From Vicugna vicugna (lineage: Eukaryota), in NCBI GenBank assembly GCA_013265495.1, contig MU060767.1:5195546-5259545 (forward strand): a DNA stretch of 64,000 nucleotides. The letters are read 5' to 3'. The translations under genes and the position numbers were made by a program. Below are positions 37,101 through 40,100 of the stretch, in pieces; position 1 is the stretch's first letter, and every line of letters starts with the position of its first letter. Under the pieces are notes generated by a model. That model did not search any database. It saw nothing but the letters and a program-made list of their open reading frames with translations, and had not been told where the DNA came from.

Positions 37101-40100
37101 CATAAGAAAGGAGTTGCCAGGGACAAGCTACCTTTAGGCTTGTCAAAGGACACTCTCAGTGAGTACTGGGTTGGATAGTAACTCATTGACGTCTTGACCG
37201 TAACAAAATGTTTTCCCCACTGACCCTGAAAGCAGTTAAGATGTGACTGCTAGAAGTGTCCTGTACAGGGTGGAAGTCAGAATTGGTTGAGAACTCCCCT
37301 CTCCAGCCTCTCAACAGGCTCCTCCTGCTGTCATCTGGGATAACAGCACCATCCTTGACTACCCTACTGTTTCAAGTAGCAGCCCTTCTGCTCTGAGAAG
37401 ACCCTAAATCACTCAATCTTGCTGCCACATCTCAATTCTCTCAAAAATTCTAGCTCAAGTGCAATGTTCCTTTAAGTAGCTAGTGTTCTGCCATGGCTGG
37501 ACAATATTTTTTTTTTTAAATTTCTAACCTGGAGCCTGTGAACTGTCTTTAATTATTCAGGGGGATGAGTTCAGTTTATATACAAGATTCATTAACAGTT
37601 AAGATCTGACACCCCAGAGACTGATGCAAGACCCCAGTTTATGAATAAACACTGGCTAGACTATGAGCTCCATGAAAGAATGCCCTTTCATGGAGCTCAT
37701 AGTCCCCAGGCCAACTTTATGGAGGTAAACCCCACTGGAGGACCTTGGTATTACTACACATAATCCAAGGTCTAAAGGAGCTAAGATTATCCAGGCACAA
37801 GAAAATCACAAGATGAAGCGTGAATCCTGGAGAGACCAACCACTTGAAGGCAGCAACTCTTTTTTTTGTTCACAGTCAGCAAAACTCAGCAGGGTGTGGC
37901 CATGCCACAATTCAACAAGTTCTTCTTGCCAGCCTTCTCTGAGAAATGGGCGCAAAGAGTGGAAAACGGGAGAACAGACAACACTGTAGCCCATAAGATA
38001 TATCTCCAGGACCTGGGAACCACTGCAAAACTACATTAAGTACACAGAAGGCTGATGTACATGCTGAGGGAAGCAGTGTTACTGTCATTTATTAAGATTT
38101 GCTCAAGATAAGACTTTCTTATCCCTTCACAAATTTAAATGAACTTTAACCATAATCATCTGTGCCATTTGTCTTCTACCAACTATCTCGAAGCACATGG
38201 CATTTTAAACTGTGTCAACAAGGATATAATGGAGAATCCACCACTCTAAANNNNNNNNNNNNNNNNNNNNNNNNNNNNNNNNNNNNNNNNNNNNNNNNNN
38301 NNNNNNNNNNNNNNNNNNNNNNNNNNNNNNNNNNNNNNNNNNNNNNNNNNNNNNNNNNNNNNNNNNNNNNNNNNNNNNNNNNGCAGGCACAGAATGAGCA
38401 GAGGCTTTGCGTTCCCTCCCAGGCAACCCACGGCCTTAGCGTGAAGCTTGTGCCCCCTCACACGTACTTGGTATCCTGAAGGCTGTTTCCACTATAGATG
38501 TACATTCGTTTCACAGTTGCTCCATGGGGTATCTGGAGAGAGGCCAGACCATGGGCAAAATTGGGCTGCAAACACAGAAAAATTTCAGTAAAAACACACT
38601 GCAACATTGTGCTGTACACTAGAAATTGATACACTGTAACCAACTACACTTCAATTAAAACAACAACAACAAGACAAATACACTTCAGGCCATGTGACTC
38701 AGGCTCTGGCATTTCCCTAAAACTCACGGCCTTCAAAAACTGGCCAGGTCAAAGCACACAATCAAACCTGCCTCCAGGTCAAAAAATTCACACCAACCAT
38801 GGAAGTTCTTCCTTAATGTTACTTAGTTTTTCATTCTTTCATCAAGGAGAAAATGCAGAAATGCCTCCTTTAAGAAAATGTAAACTTACAAAAACCTATC
38901 ATTTCATAACCCTAAGGATGCTGTTGCCTAAGGATGAATGAAACATTTTGCTAAAAGCAATACATAACTGAAAGTCCAGGATGAATTCTCTCAAATTCTA
39001 GGCCATTGAGAAAAACTGCAGTGATCTGGTGTTTTAAACTACATGACAGAGATTTACTTACGAAAAATGAGCTCAACCTCACTTTTTAGCTGGAAGTGCC
39101 CCCTTCCTGGGAATGCCAGCCTGAGCTTTGTTCTGTCAACTTCACCCACTCTACCCACCCTGGCCCCTGAAGATATCAAAGACGATGAAACCAAAGAAAG
39201 GGTACCTATCCAGCTTCCCCCAATGGCACTGTCTGCTGACCCATATCACCTGGGCATTGGGCAACATACAACAGGGAAAGAGAAGGGCTAACCTCGTACT
39301 TAGGAGCCTCAGTCCATGAGTCCAGCTGAAAAGAGAAAGACAGTCCTCTGAAGTTGAGGTGGAAGAGCTGCTCAGCGGAGTTGTACACTGTGGGAGCGGG
39401 GAGAAGAAAGTGACTTGGTTGAATGGCATCAGAGGCTGCAGACACAAACTAGCCAGGCAGCAGGTAATGACTGGCAACACCTTCCTTGAGTCTCATTTCT
39501 GAACTGAACTACTAGGCTGAAAACAAAGGGAAGGAGCTTTCCTTCACACCCAAGTACCAACCCCAAAATCCTACAGGAGCATGACTTTGGGGTTGGGGCT
39601 GGGATGGCACTCCTTGCCAGGTTTATCACTATGGACTGCCACAGATGACCAGAGGAATCCGCTGGACTTGGCTTACCTCCAGGATGGGTTGCACCAAAAG
39701 ACTGGTCAATCTGCTCAATTGTGGGAGCTATGGCTTGAGAATTGAAATGTACGCCACTGAAAAACAAAGATACTTTTTAATACCAGGCTTTGTAGGATAG
39801 ACTCACAGATCATTGGAGACGGTGGTTGGAAGCTCTTAAAATGCAGGTGGGTGAGTCTACAATAGCATCACAATAAAAGTTTAACTACAGAACTTTCAAA
39901 TAATGAGGTCAGAAATAGCCAATTCTCCTAAGGCTGATATACAGAATTAATCTTCTAGGTCCTCTCAAGACATCTGTGGCCACCAGGATCAGCTCAGAAG
40001 GAAATAAATCCAGCCTCAACCTCATGGCATTTGGATTTGGATAGAGCAGTCACAGAAATAGACAGTGTTAATGTGTTTTCCCAGGATGCCTACTTGTAGT

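Follow-up and report, generated by a model that had tools for sequence, protein, structure and literature searches.

A perfect hairpin in a PHAF1 intron of Vicugna vicugna, most likely a neutral template-switch fossil within a LINE-2 fragment

The DNA analysed here (the window) is a 64,000-nucleotide stretch of Vicugna vicugna (assembly GCA_013265495.1, contig MU060767.1, positions 5,195,546 to 5,259,545 of the forward strand), and all coordinates are those of the window unless a fetched locus is named. It carries PHAF1 on the minus strand, the neighbouring gene B3GNT9 on the plus strand and, within a PHAF1 intron, a perfect palindrome embedded in a LINE-2 fragment. An earlier reading made from the letters alone (the sequence-only reading) had noted geometry like that of a primary microRNA (pri-miRNA) in this palindrome and had suggested a recent template-switch inverted duplication or selection. 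Comparison with orthologous loci points to an old template switch, and the hairpin is regarded with good confidence as a fossil of that event, most likely neutral and to all appearance functionless.

The hairpin, its host intron and its LINE-2 sequence

Translations of the PHAF1 exons were compared with the Pfam profile PF03676 one at a time, and the matches fell on minus-strand open reading frame (ORF) translations in colinear order, with profile positions 72-104, 103-138 and 135-171 at 39.5-38.46 kb, 212-249 and 247-276 at 35.6-34.9 kb, and 356-383 at 31.8 kb, which places PHAF1 on the minus strand, as had been proposed. The hairpin is intronic, lying between the exon-bearing minus-strand ORFs at 38461-38643 (profile positions 135-171) and 35449-35703 (profile positions 212-249), and the nearest exon-bearing stretch is ~560-800 nt away. 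Among the ORFs in 35.7-38.46 kb, none was found to code for profile positions 171-212; a masked run of N at 38251-38382 sits where the exon for these positions could be. Six RNA sequencing runs contain 13-47% of the words from the 1.2 kb around the hairpin, shares that agree with passive transcription of the intron and are no proof of processing.

A repeat search returned the two arms at 37659-37678 and 37685-37704, 20 nt each, 100% complementary and separated by a 6-nt spacer, reproducing the arms and loop of the sequence-only reading to the nucleotide. No second perfect short-spacer inverted repeat of equal size is present within the 64 kb, and the analytic chance expectation for such a repeat is ~6e-7 per window. 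The original LINE-2 3'-end sense sequence, CTAGACTATGAGCTCCATGAAAG, occupies 37656-37678 on the plus strand, its last 20 nt forming the left arm, or 3p arm once transcribed in PHAF1 sense; it is conserved in horse, bat and sloth, and no other copy of it occurs within the window at up to 3 mismatches. The spacer AATGCC (37679-37684) is ancestral LINE-2 sequence, aligning with CATGGCC in sloth and CATAGCC in horse, and is CACAGGT in cervids. The first 5 nt of the right arm, CTTTC at 37685-37689 (CCTTC in cervids and sloth), are an older complement of GAAAG/GAAGG in the left arm, a short stem that could prime a fold-back, and the remaining 15 nt, ATGGAGCTCATAGTC at 37690-37704, are the reverse complement of 37659-37673 and are found in camelids and cervids, not in horse or sloth.

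Minimum free energy (MFE) folding of an 85-nt segment against shuffled sequences gave -44.0 kcal/mol (z -7.0) for the minus-strand RNA and -43.0 kcal/mol (z -8.3) for the plus strand, and a 121-nt fold of both strands, a check that the sequence-only reading had called for, gave -55.6 and -49.8 kcal/mol, respectively. The claim that hairpin geometry is confined to the transcribed strand is overstated for the window, where the 85-nt folds differ by 1 kcal/mol, but the asymmetry is clearer in Camelus (minus -44.0 vs plus -38.7 kcal/mol) and in deer (-39.5 vs -32.1 kcal/mol). With muntjac at -45.8 kcal/mol, the host-strand fold ranges from -39.5 to -45.8 kcal/mol across all carriers (z -5 to -7.5), and the sloth segment, which has no right arm, folds no better than shuffled sequences (-13 kcal/mol, z -0.2).

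The minus-strand MFE structure has 32 pairs, running from an apical G·U through 20 Watson-Crick pairs and a basal G·U to a 2-nt bulge, a CUGG/CCAG helix and weaker pairs, so that the ~32-bp stem described earlier holds in its total, but the exact 4x1 internal loop and 11-bp lower stem were not reproduced. The CUGG/CCAG helix corresponds to CTGG at 37652-37655 and CCAG at 37706-37709 (ancestral flank, shared with snow leopard and bat) and is the only helix below the arms kept in all four folded species; the four-species consensus structure retains the upper 21 pairs and these 4 bp, giving 25 hairpin pairs. The apical loop is 4 nt in the camelid MFE structure (6-nt spacer) and 8 nt in cervids. 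A competing small hairpin between CCAGT (37634-37638) and ACTGG (37651-37655) is also present, as had been pointed out.

For comparison with known LINE-2-derived microRNAs (miRNAs), sequences of miR-28, miR-151 and miR-708 were taken from PMC6433296. The core of the host-sense 3p arm, GGAGCUCAUAGUCUAG, shares 15 of 16 positions with miR-151a-5p (GGAGCUCACAGUCUAG), and miR-708-3p, miR-28-3p and miR-151a-3p, in the form given there, match the plus-strand arm, observations that support, at the level of sequence similarity, the proposed derivation of the arm from the LINE-2 3' end. The fragment is sense on the plus strand and hence antisense to PHAF1. A second LINE-2 3'-end-like copy, at 59441-59520 on the plus strand (CTAGACTGTAGGTTCCCTGAGGGCAGG...), shows within the window how LINE-2 sequence runs on beyond the motif and lends further indirect support to the LINE-2 assignment.

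The hairpin resembles the miR-28 family (mir-28, mir-151, mir-708) in using the same LINE-2 3'-end segment, in being intronic and in being transcribed with its host gene. It differs in register, as the sequence-only reading had recognized, since its loop is at the CAUGAA side and not at the CUAG side; the LINE-2-antisense arm is therefore 3p and not 5p, and any product would have another seed. It appears, moreover, to consist of one LINE-2 copy and a fold-back copy, whereas the miR-28 family derives from two LINE-2 elements, it is confined to cetartiodactyls, unlike that family, and it does not match the family's Rfam models, none of mir-28, mir-151 and mir-708 being among the Rfam matches at E up to 10. 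No Rfam family was matched at all, the best hits being generic palindrome matches (mir-9256, 20.8 bits against a gathering threshold of 80, both strands), and the muntjac hairpin likewise matched no Rfam family.

Species comparison and probable origin by template switching

Orthologous loci were fetched via B3GNT9 orthologues with 10 kb flanks. Metagenome scans with two patterns, the left arm and the junction of the right arm (present only after the switch), returned no match. The survey of carriers covers camelids and cervids, with the pig, bovid, whale and hippopotamus sites outside the comparison; the fetched pig, cow and sheep loci end ~640 nt or more short of the site, and the manatee locus has no alignable sequence there. 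In cattle (loci L005 and L006) and sheep (L012), a ~2.8-kb bovid insertion at ~18.17-20.95 kb lies in the same PHAF1 intron and is not found in deer, muntjac or camelids; it has pushed the hairpin site past the 10 kb flank.

Over 800 nt around the hairpin, the window is 98.3% identical to Camelus ferus and C. dromedarius, and both Camelus species carry the palindrome with 19 of 20 right-arm positions matching the reverse complement of their own left arm, the remaining position being a C opposite the window's T at 37700 (G·U on the minus strand, A·C on the plus strand). Absence from other camelid assemblies had been named as the sign of an artefact, and the palindrome is present in both. White-tailed deer carries it at 18/20 and two muntjac assemblies at 19/20, all with C at 37700; the third muntjac assembly (L015) also has this C and one additional T>C, again producing G·U on the minus strand, which gives a muntjac range of 18-19/20. 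The cervid arms end in GAAGG/CCTTC, compared with GAAAG/CTTTC in camelids, both sides of the pair 37677/37686 having changed: position 37677 is A in camelids and G in cervids and horse, and its partner 37686 is T in camelids and C in cervids and sloth. At 37700, the C>T seen in the window completes the perfect stem, turning G·U into A-U on the minus-strand RNA and A·C into A-U on the plus strand. In the lower stem, a dromedary-specific G>A (L002, ~20658, equivalent to window 37710) turns C-G into U·G in PHAF1-sense RNA and gives C·A on the other strand.

Among the outgroups, horse keeps the left LINE-2 motif, followed by different sequence that is broken by a short interspersed nuclear element (SINE), without an inverted arm, and in sloth the left motif, loop and CCCTTC are retained and followed by TGTAGGTTTTGAGACTG, also without an inverted arm. 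Bat and snow leopard have deletions at the site and are uninformative. Once the SINE and one target-site copy are removed, 35 of 49 positions are colinear between horse and sloth. When the left arm of either species is reverse-complemented, at most 5 nt of that species' sequence resemble it, compared with 18/20 in deer, 19/20 in Camelus and 20/20 in the window. The horse insertion (L007, 20771-21012), which we take to be an equine, ERE-like SINE, lies exactly at the counterpart of the cetartiodactyl right arm and has a TGGGCT-type target-site duplication. The minus-strand arm was also considered as the original LINE-2 copy and was rejected, the outgroups showing that the plus-strand left arm is the original one.

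Template-switch mutations (TSMs) were defined as in Monttinen et al. 2023, whose criteria are an inverted stretch of 15 nt or longer and 5 or more mismatches accounted for by it. Against the reverse complement of each carrier's own left arm, the inverted fragment extends over 20/20 positions in the window, 19/20 in Camelus and muntjac and 18/20 in white-tailed deer. The parental state is seen in sloth and horse, which have no arm, and ~8 differences (~7 inserted bases and 1 mismatch) are explained at once; relative to sloth, cetartiodactyls carry ATGGAGCTCAYAGTC instead of TGTAGGT, directly after CCTTC. The right arm is a templated reverse-complement copy of the left, and because of this the two arms share their departures from LINE-2, as the sequence-only reading had observed. 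Its idea of a template switch was right, but the switch is not recent: the palindrome is common to camelids and cervids and is therefore older than the camelid-ruminant split.

In the proposed mechanism, the ancestral state would have been as in sloth and horse (...GACTATGAGCTCCATGAAGG-loop-CCTTC-TGTAGGT...), in which GAAGG and CCTTC formed no more than a short and imperfect stem. During synthesis, the CCTTC end of a nascent DNA strand would have paired back onto GAAGG within the same strand and been extended by 15 bases templated from its upstream sequence (ATGGAGCTCAYAGTC), a quasi-palindrome extension; the strand would then have returned to the template, replacing ~7 bases and creating a 20-bp palindrome in a single step. 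From the distribution of the arm among the aligned loci, the switch probably happened once, on the cetartiodactyl stem, after the split of the horse lineage and before the camelid-cervid split. General mammalian divergence times would put its absolute age at tens of millions of years. The palindrome would then have drifted at close to the neutral intronic rate, with one transition, giving G·U on the host strand, that predates the divergence of camelids and cervids, a paired G:C to A:T change on the camelid branch, one pair-breaking change in white-tailed deer and one extra transition in one muntjac assembly, until in New World camelids C>T at 37700 restored the perfect stem, whether by chance or by a second templated correction; throughout, the hairpin would have been passively transcribed within PHAF1 pre-mRNA. 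Only this last step to perfection is specific to the New World camelid lineage.

New miRNAs are documented to have arisen from intronic TSM hairpins (Monttinen, Frilander and Löytynoja 2023, PMC10710096). The hairpin resembles those of that set in having an exact reverse complement of at least 15 nt nearby, in probably arising on one branch, with few parental bases replaced and a cluster of differences explained by one event, in the conversion of unstructured intronic sequence into a stable hairpin, and in its expressed host gene. Unlike them, it is cetartiodactyl, old and placed inside a LINE-2 fragment, it is not known to give a small-RNA product, and its loop is shorter than those of TSM-born miRNAs.

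Selection, drift and rival explanations

Substitutions were counted by Fitch parsimony over seven taxa (the window, two Camelus, white-tailed deer and three muntjac assemblies). The 40 arm sites required 5 steps, where the rate in 1060 ungapped flanking sites predicts 8.6 (Poisson P 0.14), 12% of 40-site flank windows were as low as the arms, and the arm identity between window and deer (36/40) lies within the range of neighbouring blocks. A neutral rate of arm change is thus not rejected. The loop required 3 steps in 6 sites. Changes within the stem include one compensated pair, one pairing-restoring change and one deer transversion that breaks a pair.

Several observations nevertheless weigh against drift alone. 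The minus-strand fold is more stable than the plus-strand fold in every species, near-perfect pairing has persisted since before the camelid-ruminant split, and the muntjac arms show 0 changes in 40 sites against ~4 expected per lineage. The pair 37677/37686 has changed on both sides (consensus pair 55/66, AU in 3 sequences and GC in 1). All three lone stem transitions (the 37700 state in Camelus and cervids, the muntjac L015 change and the dromedary lower-stem change) are G·U in PHAF1-sense RNA and A·C on the other strand (P ~0.1), a suggestive pattern, in that RNA-level constraint would resemble it. Because perfection in this genome was the ground for choosing the locus, ascertainment in part dictates that changes on its lineage be paired. 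A DNA-level alternative is offered by templated correction between imperfect arms, which, according to PMC13100816, homogenises inverted repeats.

One rival reading is a cetartiodactyl-restricted intronic small-RNA gene (a miRNA or a short hairpin RNA-like Dicer substrate), born by template switching and then selected, with PHAF1 pre-mRNA giving rise to a 5p/3p duplex whose 3p arm is LINE-2-antisense like miR-28-5p and miR-151-5p. Such a gene would have formed in one step and been kept since before the camelid-ruminant split with only G·U changes tolerated, and its 3p seed would be shifted from those of miR-28/151/708. In its favour stand the stable host-strand fold in all carriers, the single compensatory pair, lone transitions that are G·U on the host strand in 3 of 3 cases, a loop that diverged where the arms did not (3 steps in 6 sites vs 5 in 40), and the documentation of both intronic TSM hairpins (PMC10710096) and LINE-2 3' ends (PMC6433296) as sources of miRNAs. 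This reading, in each of its forms, is considered improbable. With 32 bulged pairs in camelids and a loop of 4-6 nt (8 nt in cervids), the hairpin falls short of the preferred ~35-bp stem and loop of at least 10 nt (PMC10710096), the lower stem is not conserved in cervids, and the arm rate is not significantly below neutral. Inspection of the sequence gave no CNNC 16-18 nt past the predicted 3p cut, nor a basal UG where one would be expected, points that the sequence-only reading had itself raised along with the short loop. The perfect state was, moreover, the selection criterion, which makes the paired changes in the window lineage partly ascertainment, and the base rate is ~0.3-2% of TSM hairpins: in primates, more than 6,000 TSM hairpins include 18 MirGeneDB miRNAs or 111 miRBase loci (PMC10710096), a yield that puts the prior for a miRNA below a few percent. 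The arm sequences had no match in a full-text literature search, and the supplements of an alpaca skin small-RNA study gave none either, a weak negative as novel-miRNA prediction there used the bovine genome. Loop size, lower stem, motifs, arm rate and the lack of an Rfam family leave the pri-miRNA reading of this sequence unsupported.

Selection could also act at the RNA level on a structured element of PHAF1 pre-mRNA, affecting splicing kinetics, ADAR editing or protein binding. The pairing-preserving changes and the strand asymmetry would speak for such an element as they do for a small RNA, and the intron words are present in the six RNA libraries, but there is no reduction in rate, the nearest exon-bearing stretch is distant by the ~560-800 nt given above, and gene tables show PHAF1 intact in horse, sloth, bat and snow leopard, all of which are without the arm; the element is held to be slightly more improbable than the small-RNA gene. 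A functional role of either kind, as small RNA or as structure, is unlikely even when the two readings are taken together.

According to Petri et al. 2019 (PMC6433296), a pair of L2 elements in opposite orientation underlies many L2-miRNAs, and the arms could in principle likewise be the 3' ends of two LINE-2 copies that inserted separately in head-to-head orientation, the arrangement at mir-28 and mir-151. Independent copies would, however, have diverged far beyond 18-20/20, the right arm is just 15-20 nt long with flanks colinear with the same plus-strand LINE-2 copy in sloth and horse, and the outgroups indicate a ~7-nt replacement and not the insertion of a second element; two inverted insertions are contradicted by this colinearity and are very improbable. 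Least credible is an artefact of assembly or sequencing in one assembly. Chimeric reads can yield perfect palindromes, but 14 DNA-type runs from six studies, under four organism labels, hold 0.99-1.00 of 141 sampled 31-mers from 37000-38240, a range in which ~76 of 1211 word starts overlap the hairpin, so that its absence would cost ~9 of the sampled words, and the palindrome is found in seven independent assemblies of other species, among them two Camelus, white-tailed deer and three muntjac. An assembly artefact is refuted by these word shares and by the other camelid assemblies.

Neighbouring features and meaning

In B3GNT9, the single-exon neighbour at 27639-28844 on the plus strand, 265 residues agree at 100% with two Vicugna pacos isoforms, and identity to the Camelus proteins is 98.8%; together with the 98.3% around the hairpin, these values place the window in a New World camelid and make the two Camelus assemblies comparators from the other camelid tribe. 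In Camelus ferus (L001, 10001-19375), the annotated range of B3GNT9 overlaps the oppositely oriented PHAF1 at its 3' part by ~7.7 kb. The C. ferus isoforms X3 and X4 are common to residue 295 and then diverge, and the alpaca isoforms diverge after residue 265; these isoform differences point to alternative 3' exons overlapping PHAF1. Within a PHAF1 intron, a tRNA-Ala(AGC)-like sequence at 40490-40561 on the minus strand scored 41.2 bits with the Rfam tRNA model (gathering threshold 29) and was placed at the same coordinates by ARAGORN; it could be a tRNA gene, a tRNA pseudogene or the head of a tRNA-derived SINE.

The hairpin, read as a template-switch fossil, provides a datable example of how a template switch can turn a decayed LINE-2 fragment into a near-perfect hairpin within a transcribed intron. 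It also illustrates that a perfect palindrome is not necessarily young, being old here, with its perfection restored by one late transition. Without processing, the hairpin is an ordinary mutational fossil; processing into small RNA would make it an L2-derived miRNA born by TSM in a lineage other than primates, with outgroups preserving the parental state. New miRNAs are considered to emerge from hairpins of this kind.

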